This document shows positions 8,527 to 57,261 of a stretch of 64,000 bases of DNA, one piece after another; position 1 is the stretch's first letter; every line of letters begins with the position of its first letter. Origin of the DNA: Guillardia theta CCMP2712 (taxonomy: Eukaryota; Protista; Cryptophyta). The stretch is from assembly GCF_000315625.1 (NCBI RefSeq), contig NW_005434584.1, forward strand, positions 1 through 64,000, written 5' to 3'. Below the pieces are notes generated by a model, which saw only the letters and a program-made list of their open reading frames with translations, ran no database searches and was not told the DNA's origin. Position numbers and translations under genes: made by a program.

Positions 8527-9716
8527 ACTAACTTAGACCTAGCATCGGGTACATCTGTCGCGTGATGTATTGCAATGTTTACAGAGTCAACCGCCGCATC
8601 TCCCTGCAGCGTGCAGGCCCGCGGAATTGGTCTGTGGCAGTTTGTGAATCTACCAGACTTCAGGTATTTGTTGATAAGAGTTTGATCTCCAAACTCCGGT
8701 CGTTCCTGCAGTGTACAGTTAGCGACGAGTTCCATCATGTTCCTCATGGCTTTGCTGTTCCTTATGATAAAAAAGCCACTGTTGTAATCCATTTCTCCCC
8801 TTTCCGCCATGCCAAAATAATCTAAGTGAGCAATCCTTGCATATTCGAAGAAATCGAGAGTGATACTGGTGTTGAAAAACTGGATGTCACCATCGCACAA
8901 GAGCAAATAGTCGATTGTCGGATTTTCTGTCATGAACGTAACCAGATTGCGAATCTTTTGAGTCACAGAGAAATACCAAGACTCAGTCCTGAATCCAAAT
9001 TCTCTAAACCTTGCCAGATCGATTTCAAAAACGTGCACCACAAATTCCTGTCTTCCTGTGATTGATCGCATAAACCCCTGCTCGAACAGAGTTCTAAAAT
9101 TTTCTGAGAGGTTTACGACGACATGCTCCATGCGTTTCAAAACATTTTTCTTTGTCAGAGCACCAGTACTGCTCCTAGGTGATGGAATCTGCCTCCCATC
9201 ATCCGATCGCCTCTGCCTCCCATCATCTGATCGACTCTGCCTCCCATCATCCGATCGCCTCTGCCTCCCATCATCTGATCGCCTCTGCCTCCCATCATCC
9301 GATCGCCTCTGCCTCCCATCATCCGATCGCCTCTGCCTCCCATCATCCGATCGCCTCTGCCTCCCATCATCCGATCGCCTCTGCCTCCCATCATCCGATC
9401 GCCTCTGCCTCCCATCATCCGATCGACCCTGCCTCCCATCATCCGATCGCCTCTGCCTCCCATCATCCGATCGACTCTGCCTCCCATCATCCGATCGACT
9501 CTGCCTCCCATCATCCGATCGACTCTGCCTCCCATCATCCGATCGTCTCTGCCTCCCATCATCTGATCGAGTTTGGATCGAAACACGTGATCTTGCTGTA
9601 ACATTTGAAGTGTTGCGCAAGAAACTCATGTAAAGAAAGATCAAAAGGAAACTGCCTTGCAAACAAAGACATCGAAGAGAGCGTGAAGGAAGATGACCCA
9701 TTACTAGATCCATCAT
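8527..9716 (-). CDS. Type II membrane glycosyltransferase, nucleotide-diphospho-sugar transferase (GT77-like), 3'-truncated and fused in frame to gypsy pol
   Basis: N-terminal TM (FLLIFLYMSFL), repeat stem, then LLLCDGDIQFF (DxD), YNSGFFIIR, GDQTLIN, IHHA. The missing C-terminus is visible at 12541-12657. Confidence 0.75.
9188..9570 (-). repeat. 24-bp coding minisatellite (RSDDGRQ[R/S/G]), about 16 units, in the GT stem
   Basis: Tandem units of cgatcggatgatgggaggcagagg with minor variants. Confidence 0.95.
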
Positions 9717-10108
9717 TCCATGCGCACTCTGATTGGCAACGTTTACTCAACAGCAGCCAGCTCTGCAGGCGATAGGTAGACCTGACCAATCCGCCCCAGA
9801 GAAAAGACTCCCTATCAAGGAGAGGCAGCGAAAAAGTAGGCTTCCTACACTAGGCAAGCTGATTGTCCTCGTACCGGTTTTGCATTCAGCGCTGGCTATA
9901 AAACTCTTTTACACTGTCAGGGACGCCGTTTTCAACAGGGAAAATTTGTAGCCATTCTCTGGAATATTTGCCTGAGTATTCAAATTACTACTACAAGCAA
10001 CTTTCAAAACAATCGACGGCTACCCCTACCCATCATGCTTGCTAGCTGGCAACCTCTATGAACGGGTGGGCTAGGCCTCCCAGCTGCAGCGCAAGCGATA
10101 ACAGAACC

Positions 10109-11048
10109 ATGGTCGCAATGCTGCGCATGCTTATCATTTCCTGCTGTTATGGACTATCATTCGGTGGATACAGCCCTGCTGCATCTACAAATATAACTGA
10201 GATACTATCTCGAACTGCCGTTCAATATCGACATTGCTTGAACCCGTATTCAAGTTGGGATTCGTTGTATCAAAATCTTGCAGCAGGCCCAATTCAAGAC
10301 GGGTGGGCTTGGCCAACTGATGGAGATGAGCGTCTATGAAGTCTGGGTATGCCTGGAAAATCATCCATGTGCCTTACACCCGGTGGACACCTACTTTTGT
10401 TGGGTGTTCAACGAGATGACACAATCATGGGTCCCATTTGGGGAGAACGTAGATCTTAAGCTTGTACATGTGATCCCTCGCCCTTCGGAATGTGTAGGGT
10501 ACGTGAACATATCACATTGCGCGGTGAACATTTCGATGACGGCAGACAATGCATTCGAATTGTTCGTCAACGGTGTGTACTTGGGATATGAAGATAACTG
10601 CAACTTCTGCCATACCTGGAAGTCTCAATACCTCGTATATGACTACACTGTGAACATCGATGTCATCGATGGTGAGAGAGAGATGGTGGTAGCAGCAAAG
10701 ATTATAGATTGGCCTGGTGGCCTGACTGGCCTTATTGGAACCTTTGGAGGTGTTCCCACCAGCGCATCGGCAAACTGGAAGTGTGCGACATTTCCAGGAG
10801 ATGTTCCCCCGAGGGGATGGACTGCAAGATCTTTCAACGACTCGCAATGGTCACAAGCAGTGCAAACTTTCCCAGATAGTCGATTTTTGCAACGCCCGTT
10901 GGACAAACAAGCATCCTGGATTGCTTCCCCAACGTACAATCTGAGGTACTTCTGTCGCGGAGTTATCAAGAATCCAGAGGCCGTTTGCACTCAGAATGTG
11001 AAGCAGAAAGTCCAGCCATACGAAATCCAGCTGAATGATCTGGTTTGA
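10109..11048 (+). CDS. Secreted lectin-like protein with a galactose-binding-like/CBM67-type domain; frame break near 10320-10340
   Basis: Signal-like N-terminus MVAMLRMLIISCCYG in one frame. Downstream frame has ISMTADNAFELFVNGVYLG, VVAAKIID, GLIG, WKC and WTARSFNDSQWSQA. Confidence 0.6.
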
Positions 11049-11551
11049 TTGCTTTTGGGGCTCAACGCACTTTCGAAGCAATAAACAGAAGTCTCTGTAA
11101 GAATACGATTCTTTTGTGATCTTGTATACAAAGCAAAGCCGTCACTTTATTGAACCCCACCTAAAATCTCTAGTCTTTACAACTTATTCCATCCAGGCTA
11201 TGATACTTCGGATAAGCTTTCCCCTCTGGATCTCCTGTATGAAATGTAGAGAAGTCTTCCACTCTGTTCCAAAGCTTCATTGTCTGGCCGATCTATTTGA
11301 CTTCCAGCTCGTACAGGAACTGTTCTTGGAAGCATCTTTATCTTGCTGAACATGGGAATACACTGGTAATATCACGAAAGAGAGAGTAATCCATTCTTGA
11401 GACCTAGCATCGGGTACATCTGCCGAATGGAAGATTGCGAAACTGATATTTGCCAACTTGGTGATGATGGGCGACATATTTGCGATGATCAGGGGCAACA
11501 GGAATTTGCCAAAAACCGCGGAGAGATCGGAGAGCTGAAATCCAAAGTTTG

Positions 11552-11666
11552 NNNNNNNNNNNNNNNNNNNNNNNNNNNNNNNNNNNNNNNNNNNNNNNNN
11601 NNNNNNNNNNNNNNNNNNNNNNNNNNNNNNNNNNNNNNNNNNNNNNNNNNNNNNNNNNNNNNNNNN
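11552..11666. other. Assembly gap (N run)
   Basis: Run of N. Confidence 1.
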
Positions 11667-11940
11667 GTTTTCGCAAGTCAGTGCAAAGACGATAGCTGGA
11701 GGGATCTGTAGGAGATCGAGGGTCGTTTTTGCGGCGACTGTAAAGCACGGGGAAGCCAAAGGGGCTGTTGGAAGGTTGGATGATGTTGCGAGATAACAAA
11801 TATTCCAACGTCTTTTGAAGTTCTTGTTCGAGGAAAAGCGGGAGCCGATAGGGGCGTAGACTGACAGGTTTAGCATCAGGTAAAATGTCAATGGTGGCCT
11901 GAAATTCACGAGAAATGTTATAATTGGCGGGCAGATCATC

Positions 11941-12040
11941 NNNNNNNNNNNNNNNNNNNNNNNNNNNNNNNNNNNNNNNNNNNNNNNNNNNNNNNNNNNN
12001 NNNNNNNNNNNNNNNNNNNNNNNNNNNNNNNNNNNNNNNN
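11941..12040. other. Assembly gap (100 N)
   Basis: Run of N. Confidence 1.
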
Positions 12041-12326
12041 CGGAGAGAAAGAACTGGCTGACGGTGGCGTGGAGGATGAATCAACTTGGAGAACGCAAAG
12101 AAACCAATCGTCCTCATCGTTGTCTTGTTGTTGAGAAGCAAAAACATCGGTCAATGACAGGAAAGTAACTTGCGCAAAGGATTGGGGAGCTGTAAGAGAA
12201 TTAAGCGGAACCATTTCACATGTCGGAAGACGCACGAGTTGTTGCTTGTGGGAAGATTCAATCCATACTTCACGGGTTCGGGCACGAAAAACAAGTCCAT
12301 AGCGTTGCTTTTCCGGCCGGGCGCTC

Positions 12327-12657
12327 GAACATGATGGAACTCGTCGCTAACTGTACACTGCAGGAACGACCGGAGTTTGGAGATCAAACTCTTATCAACA
12401 AATACCTGAAGTCTGGTAGATTCACAAACCGCCACAGACCAATTCCGCGGGCCTGCACGCTGCAGGGAGATGCGGCGGTTGACTCTGTAAACATTGCAAT
12501 ACATCACGCGACAGATGTACCCGATGCTAGGTCTAAGTTAGTTCAGATCCAAGCTGTGCGTGGACGATATGAGCGTGCCAACGTTCAGCAAGATAAAGAT
12601 GCTTCCAAGAACAGTTCCTGTACGAGCTGGAAGTCAAATAGATCGGCCAGACAATGA
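12327..12657 (+). pseudogene. 3' fragment of the GT77-like gene, including its true C-terminus and stop
   Basis: NMMELVANC...ARSKLV is near-identical to 8527-8742 (one C/R difference), then continues QIQAVRG...RSARQ*. Confidence 0.85.
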
Positions 12658-12885
12658 AGCTTTGGAACAGAGTGGAAGACTTCTCTACATTTCATACAGG
12701 AGATCCAGAGGGGAAAGCTTATCCGAAGTATCATAGCCTGGATGGAATAAGTTGTAAAGACTAGAGATTTTAGGTGGGGTTCAATAAAGTGACGGCTTTG
12801 CTTTGTATACAAGATCACAAAAGAATCGTATTCTTACAGAGACTTCTGTTTATTGCTTCGAAAGTGCGTTGAGCCCCAAAAGCAA

Positions 12886-13825
12886 TCAAACCAGATCATT
12901 CAGCTGGATTTCGTATGGCTGGACTTTCTGCTTCACATTCTGAGTGCAAACGGCCTCTGGATTCTTGATAACTCCGCGACAGAAGTACCTCAGATTGTAC
13001 GTTGGGGAAGCAATCCAGGATGCTTGTTTGTCCAACGGGCGTTGCAAAAATCGACTATCTGGGAAAGTTTGCACTGCTTGTGACCATTGCGAGTCGTTGA
13101 AAGATCTTGCAGTCCATCCCCTCGGGGGAACATCTCCTGGAAATGTCGCACACTTCCAGTTTGCCGATGCGCTGGTGGGAACACCTCCAAAGGTTCCAAT
13201 AAGGCCAGTCAGGCCACCAGGCCAATCTATAATCTTTGCTGCTACCACCATCTCTCTCTCACCATCGATGACATCGATGTTCACAGTGTAGTCATATACG
13301 AGGTATTGAGACTTCCAGGTATGGCAGAAGTTGCAGTTATCTTCATATCCCAAGTACACACCGTTGACGAACAATTCGAATGCATTGTCTGCCGTCATCG
13401 AAATGTTCACCGCGCAATGTGATATGTTCACGTACCCTACACATTCCGAAGGGCGAGGGATCACATGTACAAGCTTAAGATCTACGTTCTCCCCAAATGG
13501 GACCCATGATTGTGTCATCTCGTTGAACACCCAACAAAAGTAGGTGTCCACCGGGTGTAAGGCACATGGATGATTTTCCAGGCATACCCAGACTTCATAG
13601 ACGCTCATCTCCATCAGTTGGCCAAGCCCACCCGTCTTGAATTGGGCCTGCTGCAAGATTTTGATACAACGAATCCCAACTTGAATACGGGTTCAAGCAA
13701 TGTCGATATTGAACGGCAGTTCGAGATAGTATCTCAGTTATATTTGTAGATGCAGCAGGGCTGTATCCACCGAATGATAGTCCATAACAGCAGGAAATGA
13801 TAAGCATGCGCAGCATTGCGACCAT
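12886..13825 (-). CDS. Second copy of the lectin-like gene, with the same frame break
   Basis: Translations identical to 10109-11048. Confidence 0.6.
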
Positions 13826-14217
13826 GGTTCTGTTATCGCTTGCGCTGCAGCTGGGAGGCCTAGCCCACCCGTTCATAGAGGTTGCCAGCTAGCAAGCATG
13901 ATGGGTAGGGGTAGCCGTCGATTGTTTTGAAAGTTGCTTGTAGTAGTAATTTGAATACTCAGGCAAATATTCCAGAGAATGGCTACAAATTTTCCCTGTT
14001 GAAAACGGCGTCCCTGACAGTGTAAAAGAGTTTTATAGCCAGCGCTGAATTCAAAACCGGTACGAGGACAATCAGCTTGCCTAGTGTAGGAAGCCTACTT
14101 TTTCGCTGCCTCTCCTTGATAGGGAGTCTTTTCTCTGGGGCGGATTGGTCAGGTCTACCTATCGCCTGCAGAGCTGGCTGCTGTTGAGTAAACGTTGCCA
14201 ATCAGAGTGCGCATGGA

Positions 14218-14620
14218 ATGATGGATCTAGTAATGGGTCATCTTCCTTCACGCTCTCTTCGATGTCTTTGTTTGCAAGGCAGTTTCCTTTTGATCTTTCT
14301 TTACATGAGTTTCTTGCGAACACAATCTTTGCAGGTCATGGCTTCACCCCGTGCAGTTGAGCGATGGATGACCAAGGAGGCATTTCATCTCAACACTTCA
14401 AATGTTACAGCAAGATCACGTGTTTCGATCCAAACTCGATCAGATGATGGGAGGCAGAGGCGATCGGATGATGGGAGGCAGAGGCGATCGGATGATGGGA
14501 GGCAGAGGCGATCGGATGATGGGAGGCAGAGTCGATCGGATGATGGGAGGCAGAGTCGATCGGATGATGGGAGGCAGGGTCGATCGGATGATGGGAGGCA
14601 GAGGCGATCGGATGATGGGA
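14218..14620 (+). pseudogene. 5' fragment of the GT77-like gene (TM + 8 minisatellite units) fused to unrelated sequence
   Basis: Same N-terminus as the 9716 gene; homology stops inside the repeat at about 14620. Confidence 0.8.
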
Positions 14621-14621
14621 G

Positions 14622-14745
14622 ATCTCTTACCGCCAGCTCTTCTATCCTTGGGGTTGATGTGACACCAACGCCAACGCCAACACCAACACCAACCAGAGCC
14701 GAAAAACAGTATCTGGAACGAAAACATCTCTTGTTTGCCACATCA
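14622..14745 (+). repeat. Dispersed duplicate of 42713-42912 with an internal deletion
   Basis: Shared atctcttaccgccagctcttctatccttggggttgatgtgacaccaacg...catctcttgtttgccacat. Confidence 0.9.
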
Positions 14746-14832
14746 GCCTTCATCTTGGTCCTGATTCAGCCTCCTTCAAAATGTATAAACTGAGACCAGT
14801 CAAGTCAAGACGAGAAGATGACAGGAGCTATC

Positions 14833-16646
14833 TGTCAGAGCTCATAGGAACCGAGCCCGAGTCAGACAAAGGTTTACTGGAAAGAAAGGACAGTTGGTCT
14901 CGTACTCGTGTGAAACTGACTTCTCTTGGATACCCCAGGATACTCTACCCCAGTGTGAATCTGCTGAAAAGGACCCCTCTGGAGGTCTTTGTTGCAGGAA
15001 CCGTGCACCCGTGGTGGCTTACAAGCTGAAGAGGACGGGAGAGTCTTGTGGAGTACAACCCGTTGGAAGCAGCCTGCTGGCATGCGAGGATGGGGTTCTC
15101 TACCCTGCGAGAGAGCAAGGTTTCTGCTCGAAGGGCTGACGGGATGTTCAACATCTAGAGAAGAAAGCTTGTCAACTTCCAAAGAGAAATCACCCCTACT
15201 TTCCTCAGCCAAGAGACGGGTACTCCTGTCTCCTTCCTCGAAGGTATACAAGGATCATTCTCGTCAGAACTAAGTGGTCTTCTTCCCCTTTCGTGTGTGA
15301 GCCACGTCTATTTATGCCACATCAGTGTGTGTGGGTTTGTTTTGTTTGCTGTGTGAAAATAACGAGAGATAGATCTCCTTCAGTCACGCTGCTTTCCTCT
15401 TAGTAGAGAAATTCCAGCGCAAGTTCTTGTTGAGCTTCGCTGAAGGTCAATCCTGTAAAGCTTGGTGCTGTGAACACAAAGCCTGGGGATAAATGGTGAT
15501 CCGATTGGGTTGAAACCATCTCTTGAGAGTATCACTGACAGCTGAGGTATCGCCAAAGAGTAAGTCCCAGTTGGCATGGTCGTCGAGGGGAAATTTCTTT
15601 GGCGACAAGCAACCATTGCCCAAGGACGAGATGATGTCGAAGATCACATCCTTGATTTCGAGATGATGTCGAAGATCGTCAACGCCGCAGGAGGATACTA
15701 TTTCAGTCTTGAGCCTGTTGACCCTAAGCAGCATGTGACTCTGTTCACGCCGAAGTCTTGGCACCACTAGCTCCTTGGCATGTTGGAATGGCATTTGCCA
15801 TGATGATATTCGGTGCCAGTCGCTTCTTACGCGATATGTGGTCTTTGTGAGGGTTGAGGCTCTTGTTTCACGTTAGTGTATGCGGGTTCTCGCCGCATTA
15901 TCTCGTGGAGAGCTAAATGATCGATATCACCGCACAAACCAGATATACAGTAGAAAATCTATTTTGTTTTTCTGGCTTAAGAAAAGTAAAAAATAATCAA
16001 GAAATGCTAATCTACTCTATAGAACTGAACGATCCACCTCGTCAGATGAGAAGTTTGAAGGTAAACAGAGCTTCTGCAATCCTGCCTAACACCGACCTAT
16101 CGCTGCTGCGAAACTTTGTAAACATGCCTTTTTCTTTCAAAAATTCGATCTGTTCACCGTGCTTCAGGATGTGATCTGATTTGATCAAATCAGAGTGTAC
16201 CTTACGCACACTTTCTGTTAAATCGTCCATTCAGGTCTTGTTCCAGATGAATTCGGCTGATCGACTAGTCGAATGGAGAAGCATGATACAACGAGCAGGA
16301 GATTACAACAAACTGCGTGATAAAGCAGGAGGGAACCATCTTGATACATCTTTGCACATGTCGGGCAGGATCATGGTGCCCTCCTGGGCGACTCATGGGA
16401 AGGCCGTCTCGCACCGCACGGGGATCACGTCCTCCTTAGGTTGATGATCTATACGAACATGCCCGATCTCATCATGAAATCCACGCACTCTGGGTGGAGC
16501 AGGGCCTGCTAATGCTTCCGGTTCTCCTTGCAGACCTGCTTGAAGTCGGGGCAGTGGATGATGCTGTTCATGCTGTGCACCCCTGTAGAAATCCCCGCCT
16601 GGCACCCTGAGGTCGAACATGTGCTTCAAGGATAAGACCCTGAGGC
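14833..16646 (+). repeat. Segmental duplicate A of an unidentified block with short ORFs (copies at 34795-36771 and 39160-39431)
   Basis: Near-identical ORF translations, e.g. 15917/36043, 16181/36307 and 14989/34857. Confidence 0.92.
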
Positions 16647-17157
16647 TGGTGGACAGCAAATTTATTTGTGCCGATGCTCTAGGCTTTGAAAGAATAAGTT
16701 GCATGAAGCATGAGATGAGAACGACTTCTATATGTAAAAAGATTGTCTGATATCGTAATCCGTCAAATCACAATCGAAAAAAAACACTTGACAAACCTCA
16801 CACAATAGACTGACATTTGAGAGCTTTGACAGAAGATTTGAAGCCAGAAGTTGTTCCACAAACAAATTTGCTTTTGGGAAACAGATTTTTCGTGTAACTT
16901 GGACCAATCTTTAACGACTATGTCCAGAAGGCATCAATTTCCCTTGGATTCAACACGTTCTGAACCAGAAGTCTCAATTATCAACTCTTGTCCACCTCCA
17001 GGCATGCTTTGTGTTTGTTACCCGAAATCTTACAACATTGGAAATGTTTCCAGCTGAAAAGCTTGCACAAGAGACTACAAGTCAACCTTAATATGAATCG
17101 AAGGGATGGGGAGGGAGATGCAATAGCGTTCAAAACAACGAAAGGAACGCAAGATGA

Positions 17158-18363
17158 TCACGTACACGTTTCGCTGAGGCGAAAAGAGGAGTTGAGTGAC
17201 GATTCGTCTCCCCAGCAAGGCCACAATTCTGATCGTTGACACTCCATTGTCGCGTCAAATGCCTCAGATTGGCGAAAGCCAACATGAGCGTCCATCTCTT
17301 GGTAACAGATCGGGAAAGGTCTGAAAGGAGTCCCAAAGGATGAGATTGCCCCAATGTGAGACATGAGGTTGAATCTGTAGACGAAATATGATCTATCTTG
17401 TCTTCTGATTGTGAATGTTTTGTGACCTTTGGCTGTCTTCCCAAGAAACCACTCGACTATGTTATGGTCAGACGGCTTGTTCCAAATGTTGAGAAGAAGG
17501 TAAATCATGAGATTTGGAATGTCATCATTGTTTATCAAGATTCCATTTAGTCCGTAGGAGACCCGGAGTGCCTTCCATTTCCAGGCTGCATCGTACAATC
17601 TTTTGAGAATACATTTCAAGATCTTCAGTCCTCCGGTACAGAAAACAAAATCATCTTCCATCAGCAAGATGTGCCGTGACTGACCGCACGACCTGGCCAA
17701 AGATGCGCAAAGGTTCAGCACTTGCCTGAGAAGGAGCTTCTTTATCAATTCAGTGCGGTTCGACGTCTTGATGTCGTCGACGGACTCATCAAGAGTTTCT
17801 GAAATCACCTCTATGGAGGGGAACTTTAATTTCAAAGAATTGAGTTGCCGAGTGAAAGTGCGATTTTGCGCATCATTGTTTGCCAGAACGACGTGGTTGT
17901 GTTGGTTTGTTGAAGTCATCTCTTGAAAGAGTCTGTAGACAACCTGGTCTAAGTAAAACGCGTGTTGACGAGAGGCTGTTGTTATCAGAACTGTAAGGTT
18001 TGGTCGGTTGGGATCGTTTCTCTCAGTAGCGCTGGAGCAGCAAACCTGCATAGCTTTCTCGATCCATTTGACACTCTGTTGTACGTAAGATTCGTTCCAA
18101 TCTTTCAAAACTTGTTGGTTCAACCATGAGATGTCTGAGATATTTGTTTGGCAGAAGCTGACATTCAACAGATCGCCCTCAATCAAGGGGTCTTCCTCTA
18201 GTATTTGTGACTGAGTTTGAGCTTGAGAAAGAGCATCCCTGCGTCTGAGAGTACCATATCGACTCATCACTACCACGTTAGTAAGTGAGTACAAGCAGAG
18301 GAATACGAAAGCTGCCCTGACCAGCGAGGCGCTTCCATATTGTCTCGTCAAGATTTCCTGCAT
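17158..18363 (-). CDS. Type II membrane glycosyltransferase, GT54/MGAT4-like (GlcNAc transferase-type)
   Basis: TM AAFVFLCLYSLTNVVVM; LTVLITTASR, ILLMEDDFVFC, LRVSYGLNGILI, PSDH, YRFNLMSHIGAISSF. Confidence 0.72.
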   Translation of the reverse strand: MQEILTRQYGSASLVRAAFVFLCLYSLTNVVVMSRYGTLRRRDALSQAQTQSQILEEDPLIEGDLLNVSFCQTNISDISWLNQQVLKDWNESYVQQSVKWIEKAMQVCCSSATERNDPNRPNLTVLITTASRQHAFYLDQVVYRLFQEMTSTNQHNHVVLANNDAQNRTFTRQLNSLKLKFPSIEVISETLDESVDDIKTSNRTELIKKLLLRQVLNLCASLARSCGQSRHILLMEDDFVFCTGGLKILKCILKRLYDAAWKWKALRVSYGLNGILINNDDIPNLMIYLLLNIWNKPSDHNIVEWFLGKTAKGHKTFTIRRQDRSYFVYRFNLMSHIGAISSFGTPFRPFPICYQEMDAHVGFRQSEAFDATMECQRSELWPCWGDESSLNSSFRLSETCT

Positions 18364-18537
18364 GAGAGTAAATAAAAACAAGCGTTTTTTAAAAATGAAA
18401 GTTTGACCATACTGACTTTTTTTTGTTTTTTTCTTTCTAAGTCAAAAAGGAAAAGAAGGCAAAACTAAGTTGAATAAATGCTTTGGTCCCTGGGCCGTCG
18501 CTTGCGTGGTTGGAGTGCCGGTTTTCGCTGCCTCCTT

Positions 18538-18632
18538 CGTTTCCTAGTATTTTATTGAGGCGGGTTTGTTGGCTCTATCCTCCCCCTCCTTTGTTTGCTT
18601 CGGTTTGTCCTTCTTTTTCAGTCAAATAAATT
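18538..18632 (+). repeat. ~95-bp dispersed repeat, copy 1 (upstream of the GT54-like gene)
   Basis: ttcctagtatttttattgaggcgggtttgt...ccttctttttcagtcaa recurs at 20929-21022 with a few substitutions. Confidence 0.9.
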
Positions 18633-18919
18633 AAGTCAGTGTGTGACGTCGGACTGACCCCCGGTGCCCGCCAGGCCGGGCCCGGGCTGCGGCCCGCCGC
18701 GTGACTTAAACGCAGATTCCGATCAGTCTCTTACTTCGAGTCAGTTCTAACAGCTAGTAGAATTATTTTCTACAAGTCACTGAGTTATGTTGAGGGAAAA
18801 CAAGCCAACAGCCAACGGCCACAGGTAGGGAACAACGCCGGTTGTCGCTATGCTGCTGCTTCAGGGTTGGAAGAGATCACGCCGATGATGCAAGGCCGTT
18901 CAACGGTTGAATGGGCCCG

Positions 18920-19005
18920 GGGAAGGGAGTATATGCGAGCACGGGCGGCAGCGATCGCGCTGCCGCTTGAAGGAATGGCATGCGGGGGGCCCGGGGGGGG
19001 GAGTA
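18920..19005 (+). pseudogene. Remnant of the 18-aa Cys/His repeat family
   Basis: GSICEHGRQRSRC, the same unit as in the 28134 and 31915 ORFs. Confidence 0.7.
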
Positions 19006-19134
19006 CTCGGAGACTTGCATGACAGGTCGAAGCGAAGAAGCATGTTTCAAAGTGTTTCACCATCAATTCCAAAGATCAGTACCACAGCTTTATCAAAGTT
19101 CAGTATTACAGCTGTATGAGATTCAAGCAAACTT

Positions 19135-20868: not shown

Positions 20869-20928
20869 CGCAACCTCGGCATCGCCAAGGATTTTGACCC
20901 TGTTCTCAAGTTGACTAAAACCAAACTA

Positions 20929-21022
20929 TCGTTCCTAGTATTTTATTGAGGCGGGTTTGTAGGCTTTATCCTCCCCCTCCTTTGTTTGCTCCGGTTTGTC
21001 CTTCTTTTTCAGTCAATAAAAT
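20929..21022 (+). repeat. ~95-bp dispersed repeat, copy 2 (between divergent GT genes)
   Basis: Matches 18538-18632. Confidence 0.9.
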
Positions 21023-21041
21023 TTAGTTCTGCAGCATCGCG

Positions 21042-23939: not shown

Positions 23940-24179
23940 TTTATTGCTTCATTGTACGCGTTAAGACTGTGCTATGAGAACAGTGCAACAAAGCTTTAAT
24001 GATGAATCTTTTCAAAACCTATTGGGGAATTATTGCAGGCAGTGGAAAGACATTTTTTTTGAGTCTTCCGTTTCCTGCTCTTCTTGAAAGGGATCCTTGA
24101 CTTTGGTAGAGTGAACGAAACAATAAAAATCTTTCGAGTAGCTTATCAGTACGTTTTCAAGCATTTGAAAGGTCAAAAG

Positions 24180-40269: not shown

Positions 40270-40690
40270 AGGCAAGTGTATGAGGGCTCGTTTGTATGCG
40301 GTCTGAACATATCTGGAAGGCTTGTATGGGCTAGACCGTAGTTTGCAGACATGCCTCTATGGAATGCAGATCAGGTAAACGAAGAATCATTTCTGTGCAG
40401 TCCATGATTTTCTCAAAGGTAGCTGGAAAGATTGTTGCGGTGAAGACAGGTCCTAAACCTTTTGATCCGCCTTGTAATTACAGCAGAAAACTTCACTTCT
40501 GTTAAAAAGCGGGAGCGATTGGCCTTATTGTCTTGGATTGGGATCCTTCAAGCAAGTTCACGATGATTCCTAAACTTGAAACAGGATCTCAGAATGATGA
40601 CGGCTGCATTCCTTTGCAGATCGAGATCCCCTGCTGTATGGTGCTAAATCAAGCTGAACCATTGTTGCAAGAAGGAACTAAACAGGCTGA
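40270..40690 (+). pseudogene. PA (protease-associated) domain pseudogene with a 44-nt intron (40375-40418); full gene extent unclear
   Basis: Splicing gt..ag gives SGRLVWARP*FADMPLWNADQ|VAGKIVAVKTG..CNYSRKLHFC*KAGAIGLIVLD..IEIPCCMV; two in-frame stops. Confidence 0.7.
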
Positions 40691-44111: not shown

Positions 44112-44435
44112 TCAGCATCGCTGTTGCTGTACACCACATGGACCGCGTCCCGAGTCCCGACGAGCAAGGAATAAGACCCACTCCACCATCGAGCTGGTGC
44201 GCTTGCCGCTCTTGTAGTTTTGTATCCTCCCATACGCGTACCAGTAGAGCGAGGGAAAGCCCATCACTTGCATTGACTGTGAAAGTCTCGGTTCGTCGAT
44301 CGCATCCATCTTAGCCAGCATCACGTTGACTTTCTCTAAGCGCAGGAGGGAGGCAATCTTGTGGTAGATGGGCTCAAACTTCTGGCATTGCCCGCACTAT
44401 TGAGCATAAAACTCCACCAGCATGTGCCGTGCCCT
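44112..44435 (-). pseudogene. Thioredoxin/PDI-family domain with a stop at the conserved Trp
   Basis: HMLVEFYAQ*CGQCQKFEPIY..VMLAKMDAIDEPRLSQSMQVMGFPSLYWY; TAG at 44397-44399 replaces the W of WCxxC. Confidence 0.8.
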
Positions 44436-47400: not shown

Positions 47401-48729
47401 AGTGACGTAGCAGCCGCACTGATGCCTGCCGACAAAGACTGTAGGAGCCTGCGCCGAGAGGTCTGAGTCCAAGTGGAAGCAAGGACGGTTGTTGATTGCT
47501 CAATAAAGTTCACCGATGCGCCCACCGCATGATTAGCAGCAAACGTTCCCTGGACTCCTCGAATGACACCCACAAGGTTATTTGAAAGAGACTTGATCTG
47601 CACTCTTTCCTGTCCAATCGCGACAACGTCATTTACGAACAACCCAGTTGCATCGTTGACAATCATCGATGTAGCATTGAACATAATTGCAGCTAACAGG
47701 ATAGCATTCTTCAACCCTGTTCTAGACGCAACTGTTACAACATCGCTTGAAGAAGGGATACTGGGAACACTTCCGAACTGTCCTGGCTTAATGGTCAGCA
47801 GCTTTGAAGAAGATGCAATCACATATAGTCAATCTCGTTGTTAACTACCACAAAGTCTCCTGGCACAATCTGAAGCTGATCGTTCACATAGATCGAATCA
47901 TATACAGACAAGACTTTTCCTGCATTGTGTGGTACTGGGCTTGATGCCCTCGTCACATTGAGTGAGTTAGAAGAAGTAATTACACTGTTGACCAGCATGA
48001 GCTCGGATTCCACCCTAACGTACTGTCCAGAGGAGAAGCCTGTGATTGATTGAACAGGAATTGTTGTGGTTACATGATCGATGCTTGACCTGATGTAAGT
48101 GGGGTTGCTGACAATGTAGATCACTTGATCTGCAGCATGCGAGGAGCGATTGGTGATGTTCGCGGACTCAACAGCCACAACACTGGACGTGGGAGCATTC
48201 CTCACATAGAGGACTTCGTCGTCTATCTGAATGTAAGCTCCTGCTGTCAGAACTGAGTATCCTGTAGTCTCAATTGAGGTTGCATTGTCTGTGATGTCTG
48301 CCGACAATGTCAGGATTGAAGAGTTTACTGTTGTTGGGCCATAAGCCTTCTGAATGTAAACTGGGCTATGAGTTTGAGTTGTAGAACCTTGTTGACCTCG
48401 TGTCACTTGAATTGAACTTTTTGTGACGTTGGATACACCCAAAATTTCGTTGTTCACGAGTAGATAGTCATCGATTTGCAGCCCCAATGCTGTTGTATCT
48501 GTGGGGATTGATGTATTTTCACTGTTGAGTGAGGCAGACAACTGAAATGCATCGGTCGCAACTGATGCTACGGTGTGGACAGGCCAATCGGATGCAGATG
48601 TTCCGAACAACCCTCTCTTGATACCGATCGTGTTGCCGGAGATGGACGTGACACCCACCAATTCCTTCACCAATTCCTTCACCAATTCCTTCACCAATTC
48701 ATTTCCACTGCCTGGTCCTGTGCAGCCTC

Positions 48730-49030
48730 CCTGGCAACACACGCCGAGAGCATTGTCTCCATCGCATTCGTGGTCGCCCCAGCCGGCAAAAGGGCAAGTC
48801 TGCAGCGTTTGCTCGGCTCCAGTGCAATCTACATAATCCATCCAGATTGGTCCGCTTCCTCCTCCAAGCTTTTTCCACTGGACTCCCTCCGTGGGACAGC
48901 CGACTTGCCTGCACACTACTTGTGCGCCTGCATCTGAGAAGGCATCTGAATACCCGCACACCGTGCCCCACGTTCCTTCGTGATCGACTTCTACACGGCA
49001 GCACCCGTCGACGTTACAGTCAACAAGCCG
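48730..49030 (-). other. SRCR (scavenger receptor cysteine-rich) domain within the giant protein
   Basis: LRLVD..RVEVDHEGTWGTVC..AQVVCRQVGC..GGGSGPIWMDYVDCTGAEQTLQTCPFAGWGDHEC..GVCC. Confidence 0.92.
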
Positions 49031-52001
49031 AAGTCCATCAAATTGGTCAGGTACATTTGGTGATGTGTCAACATTTGGTGATGTGTCAGAATGCAACTCC
49101 ATGTACTCGCCAACGGTAAACGATTTGGATCCCAAGGCAGTAATCAACATGATCTCGTTGTCAATCTGGATGTATGTATTCGCTTTAAAGCCCCTGGTCG
49201 TAAAAACTGATAGCGTAGTTGCCGTTGCAGTGATGGATGCTTGTGTTCTAGCAACTGCAGCCAACGGGTTGTACAGCCCCACAAGTGAAGCAGCGGAATG
49301 TGAAGGCGTCTTTGTACCATCTGCCTGCGTGTATCCTCTGTGCACACTCAGCGTATTGGTCGCTGTATCAACGCCTGCCACAAGCATGAACTCATCATTG
49401 ATCGCAATCGAGCTCTCCACTGCAAACCCAACTGCTGATGCTACATAAACCGTCTCAAGCACGCCTGCAACAGATGCAGGTAAAGCTTTCTCAAGTGCGG
49501 TTCCTGGAAAGAACAACACGACGCTAGCTCCTGGCGAATGTGCTTCTCTTGCAGAACCGCCTAGAGCTCTCTCGGTCACAGTGATAGTGTTTCCAGTTAC
49601 CGTTCCAACCTTGAAGATCTCACTGTCAATCAAAATCAAGTCGTTGGCCTTGAAGGGAGACGCATCCTCCACTGGCAATTCAATGTTGGTGGTCGCCCTG
49701 AGGTCATTAGATTTCGCTGATATCAAACCGGCTTGTTTCAAGCTTCGAGCAGCGATGTTGACGTTTAAGAATGTGTGCGGGGTAGGAACAGTAGGGTTTG
49801 AAAAGAAGTGCCTTGACTCATACAGGAGATCGACACCCGTGACCTCTCCTGCATGATTTCTCCAGACAGATTGATCCACAGACATGTCACCTGGCCAGAA
49901 TGAAGGGAAAGGTCCTTGACCGTCAATCGACTTGGTGTCTTCGAAGAAGATAACCACTGTGGTGGATCCACACGACGCCCATGAGAGAACAAGAGGCTGA
50001 GATCCAAACGAGTACCCGTAGGCCCCATCGACCACATAAGGAGCATTGGACTTGCGATCCCAAGTGATCACCGCAGCACCCTGACTCTGAGCAGTTGTCA
50101 AGGTCTTGGTTGTAGGATTGAGGTAGTAAGTCTGCGCTGGGCAGATGTAGGATGGATATTCAGCAATCCGCACAGTGGAGACAGACATTCCGCCTTGAAG
50201 CGCTGCTGCAACAGTCAGGCCTGTGGTCGAGCAGGGATTGCTTCCGACGCTCACAAACGAGACTCTTGGGGCTGTGATGTACCCGGAGCCTGGGTTGACG
50301 GTTCGGATGGCAAGCTTGTACTGTGCGGCCTGTGCCGGAAGATCAGCGGCTGTGGCTGGACTCTCAGAGAGGTAGCTGTCAACTCTCGCACTCTCTACGA
50401 CGAGCTCGACGTGTGCGGCGACACCTGACCTGGACGTCGGAGGCTCCACGACAACTTTAGGAGGTGTGCACGTAGCTGAAAGAAGATTTTGAGCAGAGAT
50501 GTAGAAGTTCAATGATCCTGCAGATGCCATGAAGCCTCTGTTTCGCTTCGCCGCGTATGCAGTGGACGATGAGTACTGGATTGCTGACTGTCCAGATGCA
50601 ACTCGCATCTGGAGCGTCTTGCGTGTACGGTAGTCATTAGAAGCTGGGTTGCTCGCCTGGCAGACCTGGAGGTTATTTCTGTTGACAGGAGAGAAGAAGG
50701 CGTTGGCGTAGGAAGGCTGAGTGCACTGACCATTGAAGCATCCGCTCTCAAGAGTAGCTGTGGCCACGGCCTGTGAGGTGATGGTGCAGGACTTGCAGTC
50801 AAATGTAACAGTGGGAGCAGTGTCGTACCCGTATCCCCCCTGAGTCATGTACACGCCGTCGATGACCAACCCAACGCCCGATGCGAGATTAGTCAGCCGA
50901 GTCATATCAATCGCAAAGTACTGCGGGATGCAGTTTCCGGTAGCACCAGTGTACCCATCCTTGAGGAAGTACCTTCCGTCACTGAAGAGGATGTCGTACA
51001 CATAAGGGATTGAAGCATACCCTGATCCCTGCTGGTTGATCTGTGAAGTCTTGGATGCAACACTTGTGATCTTGATCTGTAGCTGCGTTCCTCCTAATCT
51101 TTCAGGATAGGAGAACAACAAAACGACGTTGTCGCATCCTGTTGCTGTGGACAAAGTGCCCCCCTTGTACAACAGGACGTTGGTATTCAAGGTAATTACA
51201 GCCCCAGTCGCAGTTGTCCTTGGAGGAAACGACCATGTCGGTACACCCTTGGCGGTCGCGTACATGTTGGAGGTACCAAGTGGAGATGCAGTGAAGGTCA
51301 CATTGGTTCCTTTGAAGGTGTATCCTGCTCCTGCGCTGGTGATGGTTACTCCAGTCACCCGAGAGTTCATGTAGGTAGACTGTTCCCATGTGTATGCTTC
51401 AGTCTGCCCATTCGAGCAGGCTTCGTTGAAACCTACCAAGACCGGAGAGTCCATGGCTGACGTGACCGGGTTGACAGTCTTGTACGAGTTTGAAGAAGAT
51501 TGGGTCACCTGATAGGGGCTCACCCCTCTGAAGCTGGAATATGAAGTAGATCCCCCAACTAGAACATCGACATTCGAGTAGCTCAAGAAAGCTTCTGCTG
51601 ATGCGCTTCCACAACCTGTGATGGTGACTGAAGGGGCTGAAGTGTATCCATACCCCGAGTATGTCACGTTGATTGACTGCAACACGTTGTTTATTGTTTT
51701 TGGTTCCGCCTGAGCTTGCGCTGTGCTCGACATTCCTGCCGGAGTGTCCACGGTAACTGTCGGATTGTTGCACGTGCTCCCAGCATTTGTCACGGCAATC
51801 GACACAACGTAACCGGACTTGATCTCTGCTGAGCCACTAGCCGCTGTTTCAAGGGAAAACATGGAAACAGAAGAGAACTCAGAAGAGTAAAGTCCCGTCA
51901 GAGTGTCGGTCTGGTCCCTGTTCCATTCGTACAAGAAGGAGTTTCCTGTCTCATACCGCATCGCAATGGTAGACGAGAAGTTCTGTGAAATGTATGCATT
52001 T

Positions 52002-52240
52002 GCCTGTGCGTTGCATGTGGCAGGAAATGTGACCAAAGGAGCTGAGATATACCCACTTCCCGCGTTCTGTAGGACTACTTGAGACACGCTGTTTCCATTC
52101 AGCAAGACGATGGCTGAAGCCTGTGCGTTGCATGTGGCAGGAAATGTGACCAAAGGAGCTGAGATATACCCACTTCCCGCGTTCTGTAAGACTACTTGAG
52201 ACATGCTGTTTCCATTCAGCAAGACGATGGCTGAAGCCTG
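52002..52240 (-). repeat. Recent in-frame 117-bp tandem duplication (39 aa)
   Basis: QASAIVLLNGNS[M/V]SQVVLQNAGSGYISAPLVTFPATCNA twice, nearly identical at DNA level. Confidence 0.93.
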
Positions 52241-55200
52241 CTGCCCCACGTAAGTCAATCCCGTCAAGCCATCAATATACGATCCCGAAGGATTGGGAGT
52301 TTCAATAGTTACAGTAGTTCCTGAGGGGCAGTTGTTTCCTTGTACTGCAACCTCAACTCGTCGTACACCTGAATTTCCCGACAACAAGAAGACTCCGTTG
52401 AAGTAGCTCGTCGTCCCCGTGCTGGTCACACACTGACCGATGAACCTCGGCGGGGTTGTGTATCCGCTTCCCGCGTAAGTGATCTCAAACTTGGAGGTGG
52501 TACCGGAGATGAAGCGAACCTCCGGCTTGTTTCCTCCCATGCTCTGAGGACCCTCCACGTACTTGATGCTGAAGTCACCGGTCAAGGTACCCAAGGTTAT
52601 GACCATCCCCGACACTCCGTATCCCTTCACGTACGAGCTCTTGACTGGCAGCGAGGTAGCGAAGTAGTACCTCGTCGTGTTGGAAGCGTCGTCGGTAGAT
52701 GGAGTGATGTAAGCATTGACGTCCTTGGGATACGACTTGAACCTGTACCCAGGTATGGTGATCGACACAGACTCGCCAGGCTCCACCCTCGCGCTCTTGG
52801 CAACAATCAGCTCCAACTGGGTGTAGATGGTGTAGGGCTTGTTGGCTATGTCAACGTTTCTTGGCTTGTTGCCGCTCGAGTCCACCACCCAGTACACGCC
52901 TCCTGCTCCCTGCTTGATCAAGTACTCGTTGGACCCGATCATGGCGGTCATTCCTGTGTATCGGCCAACGTTCTCCTTCACGTGGATGCTACAGTCGCTC
53001 AAGAAAGACGATGGGAACTCCTGCCCTACAAGGAAGCAAGGGGTCGGCGAGTAGTACGGGTTGTAATCGAGGATGGTCTGGGTGATAATATTCTGGTTGG
53101 CCGTAGACATGATCACTTCGAACACTGTTGCTGTCGTCACAGTGACACCAGTAGGGGCGGATGACAAGATAACGGATGGGATAGAGACGTATCCACTCCC
53201 CTGGTTGGTGACACTGACTGTTGCAACGATCATTTCGAGCTTGATAGTTGGAGCGTTGGCTCCTGTACATGTCGCAGTTGGAAAGGTCGTGTACAACCCG
53301 GGATTGGTGATGTCAATCCTGTAGCGAACGTCTGTGGTAGATGCAACAATAGACATAACAACTTCAGCCTTCGCTGCAATTAACTGAGTTCCAGCGGTGG
53401 CAGAGAATGTAATGCTCTGGCAGTTTGCCAAGTCCCCTGTATGGAGAGAGAGCCTTGCCACCTGATAAGAGATCGAAGCTGAGGCAGAGCTTCCAGATCC
53501 GGCATCTGATTGAGAGATCGTCACTGTCTGAGCAGATGCCTGTGCAGTCACTTCATAGAGTCCTGCAAACTTGACCTTGATTGCGGTCACAGAGGACCCA
53601 GGTGTTGTCGATGCTGAGAAGACGTTGTTTCTGCAAGAGATCTGCATGCCGACGTAATCGGATTGTGATGCTGACATAGAAGCGGTGTAACAAGCCTCGT
53701 GGGTGTATCCAAGAGGACTTGGTCCTGCAAACTGAACCTTCGAAAGAGTGTAGGATGCCTGATCCCCAACATCATAGTCCGACGCTCCCCAAGGGCACTG
53801 CTTGTGGCTCCAGCAGAGGTCCTTGTTCTTCTTGTAGCCGTCATCAGACGGTGACAACACAAACACTCCGTCCACGTCTGCATCCCCAGAGCGATGCGTG
53901 TTGCCGTCAGCAACATACCCCTTGGACAGATACGCCCTCGCCTTATCTTCGGAGCTGCCAAACAACTCCCATTCTAACTGTGAGGTGAAGGTGGTGAACG
54001 CCGGGTTCGAGGACTGAACTCCAAACAGAGGTCCAGACTCTTCGACTTCGTATGCTGGAAGGTTCACAAGCAGGGAGTCTCCTGCAAACAAGCGGACCTG
54101 CGGAACAATGTTCAAGACGACATCCGAAGAGGATGCTATCATCTGCAATCCGTTTGTCTGTGTTCCAGATACTATAGCCTGTGATGGAAAGTTGAATGTT
54201 GCTTGGATCGACAACGCGAGTGCGGACTGCTCTGCGCTTGGATTCTGAATCTGAAACTGAACGGTGTAGATGCTCCTGTCGTACAGATAAGCCTGCGCCT
54301 TAGCTGCAGTCACAGTTGCGGTCTCGGTTGCTGCAGGTATGACGATGACCACAGGAGTGATAGAGTATCCATGTCCAGGGTCGGTGATGGTGATCGCAGT
54401 GACCGCTCCACCCGAGATCGTTGCAGTGGCTGTCGCTCCCTGTCCCACTCCATACATCACATTGTTTGCAGTGCAAGTGGAGCTCAAGTAGAACTCAGAC
54501 CCACAAATCACAACCGTAGGGGTCTCAGTGTAGCCTGACCCGCCTGATAACACCACTATCTCGTAGATGCCGTTCGATCTCATCGCGTTTACATTGAAGT
54601 AAGGGTTGTAGACAGGCAGATTGGGTGATTGCTGGTAAGTCATCTTGAACTCGTTCTGCTTGAAGGTGCATGTTGATTCAAAGTCGCTTGCATGAATGTT
54701 TCCACTCACATCATTTGCAGCTACGTTGACATACTCGCCATTCCTGCTGATCCAGCAGGTAAACGTATCAGGCGAGGCGATGAACCCAGTGAGTGAAGCG
54801 ACTGTTACGGCCTGACTTGTTGTCAATGCATAGTTGGGTTGCAATTCCACAGTCATCCATACAGTGTTTGAGGTGACATTGGAGCTAGATCGAATGGTCG
54901 CATGCGGAAACGAAGGATTCACGATGTAGCCAGCGCAGCTTGACGGCTCTGACTCATACCCATAGACCCTCTTCACATCATCTTGCTTCATGGTGTACGT
55001 CTGTACACCAGGCGCTGCACTCGGAGCGTCGCTGGAGCTAACAATCAACGACACTGACGGACAGGAGCCCCCGTTCTTGTAGGCAGAGTTCTGATTGATC
55101 ATACGGAAGCAGAACTTGTACTTCGTTCCGAGAATCAATGTCTTGGTCACAAATTGAAACTGAATCTGTCCGTTGCCATTGTCGTAGTCTGCTTTGTCTG

Positions 55201-57261
55201 CGATGTTGTTACCAGAAATTGTGGTGAAGTAGCCCCTCAGTGAAGTGCTTGATAGAGGATGGATTCCGTACTCATCGTAGAAGTCAACTGTGGACGTGGA
55301 GGTAAACATCGGCAGTCCAGTCAAAGTAAACTTAGTCTGTTTGACAATGTTCTTGTTTGGTCTGAGGGTGACACATACAGGATTGACTGCACCTGGCGCT
55401 GGATACAACTGGCCGATCTCGTACTTGTTGAGCAGGTTGCTCGTCAAAAACAATGGATGTTTGTAACTTGACAGCGGAAGAGTTGCCGTCTGCGATTTGG
55501 TCTGTTCATCGTCCGCAAACGACGCGGAGATAGATACAGCGGGGTTGGACTGCTGGGTTTGACTATTCACAAAGGCATATTGAAGCACATAGGTCCAGCC
55601 AGCCATCATACAGTTGGTCGTCGCTCCCTTGATGGGCATCTGACAAGTGGAAGATGAAGGAAGGTGAATGATCATCTGACCGTTGGACTGAGACCACTCA
55701 GTCTTCTGGATGATCGGAGAGTAGTAGTCTGTTGACGCCGGTGATAGTGCAGTCAGAGATGTCTGCGTGGTGTCTGTTCCCGTCAAGCCCGCAATGGTGA
55801 TGGTTGCACCGTACCCATTCAAACCAAGATCAACATTCGAGCGGAGAGAAATGGTCAGTACGTTGTTCTCTTGGATCAGAGGCGTCTGCTGGGTGATCAA
55901 CCGGGTCAAGAAGCCCTTGTCGTAGACCTTCAAGGGACAGGCATCTCCGTCCATCTCTCCATCTTGCAGGGCACGATTCACAGGAGACACAACCATCTGT
56001 ACTGTCTGTGTGGCTGCATAAGACACCTGGCTGTTTTGACTCTGATACAAGGCATTGAAGGTCAGAGTGACTGTTTGACATGGCTGGGCAACCTTGGAGT
56101 TCTTCAGCGGGATCGCAAACTTGATCTCGTGATTTGCAGGAAGATTCTGAGCCGGATTCAAGACAAGTTTGGCTACTCCAGCAGCAAATTTTGCAACTTT
56201 GTTCGGTGATCCGGCTGTGACTGCACTGGTAAAATACGCAGTGGAGGCTTGTGATGGAGTTACAAGCGAGTGAGCGTTCCAATCAAAGGATGGACAGTGG
56301 TCAATGTCAGGGTTGGAGTTTTCCTGAGCTTGGCTTCCTGATAAGCCTGACAAAGTGATGGATGCCTCATTGTACTGGTCTGCATTCAGATACGTCTGAA
56401 GGTTGAAGTTGGTCTTCAGAGTTACACAGATGTAGTTGGTGACGTCAGGTCGAGTTGTAACTATTTGATGAAAGATGGCTTCTCCACCAGCCCCACTGAT
56501 CCTCCGAGGTTCGTGACAGCCTCATTCTGAACCAGGTTCGGGCCAGTCGTCAACGACACTGTCATGGTACAGGCGGAGTTCTCCTTGTCTGATACCCTCC
56601 AGCTCCATGCGAAGGCATAGGTACCTTCTGCTGCCAGAGCCTTTGTCAAGGTCAACTTCAATGTTCCAGACGACTGGCTCCAGTCCATTGTTGAACCAGT
56701 GTATCCGAGACTTGGATCTCCAATGTCAGTCTCGGTAGGAAACGAAGAGGTTGAGCACTTGCTAGTCAAAGGATTGCCCCCAGCAAACCTGTTACCCACC
56801 ATGTTTACCTTAGTTCCAAACTCCTGGGTCCCACACAGACCAGTGAAGGTGAGGATGGAAGATGTCTGGATGTCGAAGTTCGGGACCAAAGTCACAAACA
56901 TGTTTGATAAAGAGCCAGTATCTGAGGAGCTCTGGAACATAGTTGCCCGAATCTTGTTTCCGACTGCTTGGAGAATCTCAGTTGATGGGTTGAACGTAAC
57001 AGGACCAAGTGTAATGGACTGTCCAGTTGCTCCTGTACAGAAATCGGAGATCTGACAATACTTGCCCGACATCGAGATCGAAATGGACTTCGATGCCGCT
57101 GAAACAGTGCCTGGCGTCTTCAGCTGAAACGAGAAGATGACAACCTCGCCTGCTTGAATGTACATGCCAGGAAGAAGTTGGAAAGTCAAGGTTCCCGCTG
57201 CTTGAACAAAGTCTCCTTTGCCAAGTTGATTACCGTAGCTGATGGATTGGAATCTCGTTAC

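Follow-up and report, generated by a model that had tools for sequence, protein, structure and literature searches.

The first 64 kb of scaffold JH993054.1 (336,493 nt; GCA_000315625.1) of the cryptophyte Guillardia theta CCMP2712 contain a real, previously undescribed region rich in glycosyltransferase (GT) genes. This whole 64,000-nt stretch is the window referred to below, and its coordinates are identical to those of the scaffold. The glycan set of the window comprises five GT genes and one methyltransferase gene, and four of the GT genes sit side by side as intact, single open reading frames (ORFs). We favor, with moderate confidence, the explanation that this is a native cryptophyte "glycosylation neighborhood" located in a low-GC, transposon-rich, and intron-poor nuclear region of G. 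theta. An initial annotation of the same DNA had proposed a hypervariable island for cell-surface glycans, analogous to the small outlier chromosomes (SOCs) of Mamiellophyceae. We did not find a description of such a GT cluster in Guillardia in the literature.

The genome of G. theta holds approximately 271 GT genes, a total that we obtained by summing Table 2 of PMC6260743, in 87.1 Mb and 24,822 genes (Table 1 of the same paper). Against this background, the five GT genes of the window fall within 17.6 kb, which is about 90-fold the average GT density of the genome. Only 0.055 GT genes would be expected per 17.6 kb, and a count of five is far beyond Poisson expectation with approximately 5,000 such windows allowed for. 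The GT-rich stretch is statistically unusual for this genome and, given these figures, the view that its GT density is ordinary does not hold.

The window also departs from the genome in composition, with a GC content of 48.0%, or 4.9 points below the genome-wide value of 52.9% (PMC6260743). A control locus (L005) around a paralog of the GT2 gene has 52.2% GC. The GC content at third codon positions (GC3) is 0.49-0.59 among the island genes, versus 0.64 for the paralogous GT2 at the control locus. Although 79% of G. theta genes have introns and 21% are intronless (PMC6260743), every enzyme gene of the glycan set is a single ORF, and gaps between the clustered genes span 174-750 nt. Given 21% intronless genes and independence among neighbors, a doubtful assumption, six or more single-ORF genes in a row would arise with a probability of about 1e-4. 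None of these genes is interrupted by a gap (N run). Roughly 30% of the window, a figure for the window alone, is occupied by transposable elements of the LINE, Ty3, and Copia kinds and by repeats, namely satellites and a 1.8-kb dispersed repeat.

We scanned about 130 ORF pieces of the window with Pfam and judged matches against Pfam's curated cut-offs. As shown in Table 1, the initial annotation was right that four GT genes are packed into 9 kb (17161-25913) as uninterrupted ORFs, which both Pfam and the translations confirmed. It had counted at least six GT domains, of which the GT2, GT90, and GT61 domains scored above the cut-off and the GT54-, PLOD-, and GT77-like domains scored below it. 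A hydrophobic N-terminal anchor was read from the translations at the start of all six enzymes, that is, the five GTs and the methyltransferase.

Table 1. Features of the window, in order of position.
Feature	Position	Strand	Support
Non-LTR (long interspersed nuclear element, LINE) retrotransposon ORF, 2261 aa, endonuclease and reverse transcriptase	131-6913	-	Pfam RVT_1, E 6.9e-28
5'-truncated Ty3-type pol (RNase H and integrase), in frame with the GT77-like gene	6285-8526	-	RT_RNaseH_2, Integrase_H2C2, rve
GT77-like gene, N-terminal anchor, GT-A-type domain with DGD motif	8527-9716	-	Nucleotid_trans, E 1.6e-3; translation
Inverted repeat (palindrome)	9616-14318	.	Arms 9616-11356 and 12578-14318, 100% complementary
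242-aa beta-sandwich ("lectin-like") ORFs, two identical copies, one per arm	10320-11045; 12889-13614	+; -	
Partial second GT77-like N-terminus, about 8 repeat units	14188-14790	+	Translation; inverted match to 9337-9615
1.8-kb dispersed repeat	14833-16578	.	Self-BLAST
GT54-like (MGAT4-related) type-II membrane GT, 401 aa, single ORF	17161-18363	-	Pfam MGAT4_cons, E 6.9e-9
GT2 glycosyltransferase, 540 aa, single ORF, DADD motif	19138-20757	-	Pfam Glycos_transf_2, above cut-off
Two-domain PLOD-GT and GT90 fusion, 965 aa, single ORF	21042-23936	+	Pfam Glyco_transf_90, GT_PLOD
GT61 (EOGT/POMGNT2-type), 577 aa, single ORF, convergent with the GT90 gene	24183-25913	-	Pfam Glyco_transf_61
Membrane-anchored class-I S-adenosylmethionine (SAM) methyltransferase, 345 aa, single ORF	30433-31467	+	Pfam Methyltransf_25/31/12/23; transmembrane segment in translation
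Copy of the giant gene's C-terminal exon, fragment, 77% amino acid identity	33508-34197	-	Self-match
Giant Ser/Thr-rich membrane protein gene, about 3,900 aa	45706-57303	-	Inferred joining of four ORF pieces
Copia-type retrotransposon ORFs	57943-61593	+	Pfam rve, SH3_retrovirus

The GT54-like protein matched MGAT4_cons (PF04666) along model positions 34-269 of 280, scoring 35.5 bits where the cut-off is 51.5. The same model was matched by 24 of 25 sampled relatives of the protein, with a best E-value of 2.1e-16. These relatives are drawn from a family, mostly metagenomic, that numbers at least 489 cluster representatives and has an invariant EDD motif. Judged on its sequence, the protein is a distant relative of GT54 and no member of it by Pfam's rule. 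An exact-protein look-up returned no match, and no GenBank gene call exists at its position on JH993054.1.

The GT2 enzyme exceeded the Pfam cut-off (PF00535; 25.1 bits versus 23.3) and has an invariant DADD motif. Its product corresponds to an annotated protein (P0010). In the AlphaFold2 model, the GT-A domain reached a predicted local distance difference test score of about 90 and had 336 matches in the PDB at E ≤ 1e-3, with the SunS/ThuS peptide glycosyltransferases being the nearest solved structures (Foldseek E 1.4e-10). The N-terminal region is conserved and contains cysteines, and was modeled with low confidence. We could not recover the sulfotransferase-like domain reported by the initial annotation: no Sulfotransferase family match appeared among the approximately 130 ORF pieces scanned with Pfam, and the low-confidence model of the GT2 N-terminus does not have that fold.

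The fusion protein consists of an anchor, a Cys-rich module, a PLOD-type GT-A domain, a Cys-rich linker, and a GT90 domain. Its GT90 domain (PF05686, residues 634-962) scored 84 bits against a cut-off of 24. The PLOD-type domain (GT_PLOD, PF25342) scored 24.9 bits, just short of the cut-off of 27, although this family is recorded in homologs of the fusion (P0002-P0006), among which an FQDAxDV motif is invariant. The adjacent GT61 enzyme scored 46.9 bits against a cut-off of 27 (PF04577) and matched the PDB structure of EOGT (9wjk, E 2.6e-5). An N-terminal Cys-rich module with the pattern C..GG..SWG.C....FLC is common to the GT61 and GT90 proteins (window positions 21198-25775; BLASTP E 1e-7) and is kept in metagenomic homologs of the fusion. 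The GenBank model of the 965-residue fusion covers only a 132-residue GT90 fragment. Published counts of carbohydrate-active enzymes in G. theta are too low because the GT54-like gene is unannotated and the fusion is annotated as this fragment.

Two short repeats were noted in the spacers of the cluster. An 85-nt interspersed element occurs at 18541-18625 (+) and 20935-21020, in two of the spacers, with 96% similarity between the copies. The second copy ends in a pyrimidine tract and CAG just upstream of the ATG at 21042 that begins the PLOD-GT90 gene. The summed contig depth of the element is about 100 times that of single-copy sequence, and it is found in RNA reads with varied flanks. Neither the element nor the window had a match in Rfam. 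A partial unit of a 54-nt satellite lies at 18920-18965, between the GT54-like and GT2 genes, and this unit likewise has a high summed depth in genomic contigs.

Beyond the cluster, the methyltransferase gene is bracketed by 54-nt GC-rich satellite arrays (28217-28713 and 31964-32641), with a (TC)n tract nearby at 29656-30357. The presence of a membrane-anchored methyltransferase, predicted by the initial annotation, was supported by Pfam and by an N-terminal transmembrane segment. The giant surface protein that it had also predicted proved to be an SRCR-containing membrane protein rich in Ser and Thr (22% combined), under a gene model inferred from the sequence in which three 44-50-nt GT..AG introns would connect four ORF pieces in frame. 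The main ORF (47822-56353 on the minus strand, 2844 residues) has one SRCR domain according to Pfam, and the protein ends in a C-terminal transmembrane segment and tail. Its repeats match phage tail-fiber and virion structural families in PHROG, with E-values down to 4.7e-22.

Under the glycosylation neighborhood that we favor, the enzymes would act in the endoplasmic reticulum and Golgi as protein O-glycosyltransferases. The GT90 domain may play a POGLUT-type role, GT61 an EOGT/POMGNT2-type role, the PLOD-type domain a role like that of collagen glucosyltransferase, and GT2 a SunS-like one. Together, they could build and extend lineage-specific glycans, with sugar methylation, on surface glycoproteins of the periplast, and the giant Ser/Thr-rich neighbor is an obvious candidate for their substrate. 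The presence of one Cys-rich module in both the GT61 and the GT90 protein suggests that they have a stem for targeting or substrate binding in common. The cluster itself would have expanded as genes accumulated locally and domains were shuffled, in a transposon-rich, recombination-prone region, rather than through recent acquisition of foreign genes.

We considered whether the cluster could instead be a foreign island, its compact, intronless genes contributed by a bacterium or by a virus of the giant or polinton-like kind. Its tight packing without introns would fit this origin, as would GC and GC3 values below those of the control locus, relatives on environmental contigs that are likewise single ORFs, and the phage tail-fiber-like repeats of the giant neighbor. 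However, 21% of G. theta genes are intronless in any case, and the GT54, GT61, GT90, and PLOD-type domains belong to families of the eukaryotic secretory pathway. Among named relatives, the closest come from a cryptophyte, Hanusia phi, at 58% identity for the GT90 fusion and 50% for GT61. No viral hallmark domain was detected in any window ORF scanned, and three scans of IMG/VR with GT90, GT61, and a 7-sequence alignment of the fusion returned no relatives. A viral origin was dropped on the basis of those three scans. The sequences do not support a foreign or viral origin, and we judge the foreign island to be very unlikely. A conserved cassette was also dropped as a candidate, as the metagenomic contigs carrying fusion homologs have no neighboring GT genes. 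Within G. theta, the GT2 paralog (40% identity) sits among housekeeping genes, outside any GT cluster. By these sequence comparisons, the genes appear native to cryptophytes and their clustering specific to the lineage.

Hypervariability was central to the initial annotation, and it was not shown. All of the cultured data that we compared are labeled with this species or strain. Wherever these same-label datasets cover the cluster, it is colinear and 99.5-99.8% identical. Contigs from a 2011 dataset (X2) are approximately 99.8% identical over 6 kb and have the same gene order, and independent contigs match positions 17100-18522, 18931-20960, and 21050-25916, differing at few sites or at none. 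The last interval is spanned exactly by a 4.9-kb Joint Genome Institute contig (L003), which is colinear and 99.5% identical, with no intron removed and a 9-nt indel as its sole gap. This contig had no difference from the window over 2.9 kb of the GT90 gene, whereas GT61 had 14 substitutions, nine of which change an amino acid, and the in-frame, 3-codon indel. The differences in GT61 are grouped in two patches (24640-24669 and 25651-25712), a pattern that points to a second allele or haplotype mosaic, or to patches of gene conversion.

A relative from a freshwater metagenome (X16) is 2.4-4.7% diverged from the window. Between the two, GT2 has seven synonymous and zero non-synonymous changes, and the Cys-rich linker of the GT90 fusion has 16 synonymous and 15 non-synonymous changes, for a ratio of non-synonymous to synonymous rates (dN/dS) of about 0.3. 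Because synonymous change dominates, this comparison indicates purifying selection and no diversifying hypervariability.

Expression differed between the two halves of the cluster. The cluster was present in nineteen sequencing runs from ten studies. Runs X8-X15 contained 0.50-0.57 of the words of 17158-26108, yet just 0.01-0.02 of those of 17100-20900. These runs behave as transcriptomes because a DNA run would cover both halves. The convergent GT90 and GT61 pair is transcribed in culture and the GT54-like and GT2 genes are nearly silent, hence the four GT genes are not co-expressed. The GT54-like and GT2 genes are conditionally or very weakly expressed. Raw RNA reads from another run (X23, about 6% sampled) did not cover the coding sequence in 17100-23099, and holes in such a sample prove nothing.

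Expression and variation both bear on a second alternative, that of a contingency or defense locus like the SOC, in which rearrangement and switching would alter the glycan coat and permit escape from viruses or grazers. Two intact genes silent in culture, with purifying selection on GT2 (the one tested), would fit conditional use, and the patchy GT61 allele, with nine amino acid changes and an in-frame indel next to an identical GT90 gene, counts in its favor. Hanusia, the sister genus, has orthologs that are just 50-58% identical. The region shares lower GC, transposon load, GT/methyltransferase enrichment, and an inverted duplication with SOCs (PMC5082852), and cryptophyte polinton-like viruses are reported to carry phage-like fiber proteins that are proposed to bind surface oligosaccharides (PMC12220804). 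Nevertheless, no rearrangement was seen, with L003 colinear over its 4.9 kb and the 2011 contigs in the same order, and change relative to the environmental relative is mainly synonymous. The GTs belong to eukaryotic Golgi-type families with cryptophyte relatives rather than to the prokaryote-like kinds common on SOCs, nucleoside-diphosphate-sugar (NDP-sugar) enzymes and sugar transporters are absent from the window, and the comparison data are confined to one species or strain label. On balance, we regard this alternative as unlikely.

The fifth GT gene is GT77-like, and its domain is incomplete, with a score of 18.9 bits against a cut-off of 22 (PF03407). The protein contains about 17 copies of an 8-residue repeat, SDDGRQRR, encoded by a 24-nt array at 9109-9660. 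According to the translation, the 3' end of the gene was removed at 8527 by the 5'-truncated Ty3 element, and the reading frame continues into that element. A 224-nt copy of the GT77-like 3' end lies at 12327-12550, in the spacer of a palindrome.

The initial annotation was correct in reporting an inverted repeat there, as the two arms of approximately 1.7 kb are completely complementary. They flank a 1221-nt spacer that holds both N gaps (11552-11666 and 11941-12040). On its minus strand, the 274-nt piece between the gaps matches residues 51-118 of the Ty3 reverse transcriptase (4ol8_A, E 1.8e-4). Outside the gaps, the protease side and the next reverse transcriptase motif were recognized by eye, without database support, in the expected order along that strand. 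These matches are compatible with one minus-strand fragment of Ty3 protease and reverse transcriptase running through both gaps, the lengths of which are estimates. The lectin copies of the initial annotation exist as two identical 242-residue ORFs, although their identity as lectins depends on a weak similarity in features and structure to the Bac_rhamnosid_N beta-sandwich. An exact-protein look-up of this ORF returned the 2012 scaffold only, in the collections queried. A perfect palindrome of this kind, with two gaps in its spacer, could be either genuine and recent or an artifact of the assembly. Separately, a string encoding the peptide DVPDARS occurs three times, where GT77 meets Ty3, where the spacer's fragment of Ty3 reverse transcriptase ends, and where the copied GT77 3' end stops (8519-8742, 11357-11420, and 12327-12550), which hints at microhomology-mediated rearrangement.

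Such features raise a third alternative, in which the region is a gene graveyard or an assembly product whose density and palindrome would result from mis-scaffolding and pseudogenes where the scaffold ends in repeat-rich sequence, with no joint function. It would account for the truncated GT77-like gene, the in-frame stop of a PA-domain pseudogene described below, the gene fragments strewn across the window, the two silent GT genes, and a 100%-identical palindrome carried by the 2012 scaffold only. It is hard to reconcile with four intact GT ORFs of 401-965 residues, the independent contigs that reproduce all three intervals of the cluster, purifying selection on GT2, and transcription of two of the genes. 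We consider this explanation quite improbable.

Several observations nevertheless count against the glycosylation neighborhood. The GT54-like, GT77-like, and PLOD assignments all fall under Pfam's own cut-offs. Two of the four genes are untranscribed in culture data, and the sampled RNA reads of run X23 missed all three coding regions compared. No experiment or co-expression ties the enzymes to one another or to the giant protein. A Tara contig with a fusion homolog has no GT neighbors, and as a cassette the cluster is therefore not conserved. Finally, a more distant foreign origin is conceivable, given that few entries in the protein sources are named.

The remainder of the window bears out the initial description of a region of transposable elements and shuffled fragments, with LINE, Ty3, and Copia elements identified by Pfam and fragments by self-BLAST. 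The LINE ORF has additional weak matches to Exo_endo_phos and zf-RVT. The 1.8-kb dispersed repeat matched no Pfam family and is copied at 34795-36704 (89-99% identity) and, in part, at 39160-39431. A PA-domain gene remnant at 40099-40793 (+), probably a pseudogene by its sequence, is broken by an in-frame TAA at 40503 and has a candidate GT..AG intron of 44 nt (40375-40418). The initial annotation had cited this interval as a short intron of the host. Its length is close to the modal intron of G. theta (47 nt; PMC6260743), but it lies inside the pseudogene. An isolated thioredoxin-fold exon at 44115-44396 (-) has a CGQC motif and is PDI-like (Pfam Thioredoxin, E 4.9e-11).

Glycan coats determine which viruses and grazers can attack plankton cells. 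To our knowledge, the outlier chromosome of Mamiellophyceae is so far the sole well-studied genomic compartment for glycan variation in algae. Cryptophytes are a separate lineage with a plastid acquired from a red alga via secondary endosymbiosis. A similar GT-rich region in a cryptophyte would provide a second, independent system for asking whether such compartments are a general solution. A bolder proposal is that cryptophytes independently evolved an SOC-like "glycan contingency" region, a low-GC and intron-poor stretch of more than 100 kb driven by transposable elements. It would contain several GT clusters and giant surface proteins with repeats like those of phage fibers, and its silent members would be activated or rearranged to change the glycan coat of the periplast when viruses, polinton-like viruses, or grazers attack. 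We give this proposal a low probability. More immediately, the PLOD-GT and GT90 fusion and the shared Cys-rich module are concrete targets for the biochemistry of periplast glycoproteins, and there is value for annotation in one GT gene that is absent from GenBank and a 965-residue fusion that was reduced to 132 residues.

We compared the region with the systems that it most resembles, beginning with SOCs. In Mamiellophyceae, SOCs have lower GC content, are rich in transposable elements, are enriched in GTs and methyltransferases, and carry 5-14 GTs per 100-290 kb (PMC5082852). Relative to SOCs such as chromosome 19 of Ostreococcus tauri (PMC5082852), the region is alike in having GC below the genome mean, abundant transposons, GT/methyltransferase enrichment with five GT genes in 64 kb, an inverted duplication (here, the palindrome carried by the 2012 scaffold alone), and some genes that are silent under standard culture. 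In contrast, a SOC is a separate chromosome and the region is known as the start of a 336-kb scaffold. Its GTs are eukaryotic Golgi types with cryptophyte relatives, unlike the prokaryote-like genes of SOCs, and the SOC trait of many prokaryotic or foreign genes is absent here, with cryptophytes as the best named relatives and no relatives of GT90 or GT61 in IMG/VR. There are no NDP-sugar epimerases or dehydratases and no sugar transporters in the window, no variation in size or structure among the same-label datasets, and no virus-resistance phenotype. The analogy drawn by the initial annotation thus extends to GC, transposable elements, GT/methyltransferase enrichment, and the inverted duplication, but not to foreign genes; hypervariability was not shown. 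Any link between the region and virus resistance would be pure analogy.

Individual enzymes resemble known proteins to differing degrees. Relative to the MGAT4 (GT54) GlcNAc-transferases, which branch N-glycans, the GT54-like protein is alike in the conserved region that it matches and in the EDD motif that is invariant in its family, and it is unlike in its sub-cut-off score and its placement in a clade of its own that numbers at least 489 cluster representatives. SunS and ThuS are the best structural match to the GT-A domain of GT2, in which a DxD motif is present. However, identity is 12-15%, and GT2 adds a eukaryotic anchor and a 250-residue N-terminal region without a recognized fold. This structural resemblance, drawn from a model, does not imply S-glycosylation.

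The animal protein O-glycosyltransferases POGLUT/KDELC (GT90) and EOGT/POMGNT2 (GT61), which act on folded Cys-rich domains, together with the collagen glycosyltransferases PLOD/COLGALT, share their catalytic families with the enzymes of the window, as judged by Pfam and by sequence matches in the PDB, and the secretory-pathway build is also alike. The giant neighbor, as a candidate acceptor, is without EGF repeats. Unlike in the animal enzymes, the PLOD-type and GT90 domains are fused here in one 965-residue protein, which also has an additional N-terminal Cys-rich module in common with GT61, and the genes are clustered here, which they are not in animals.

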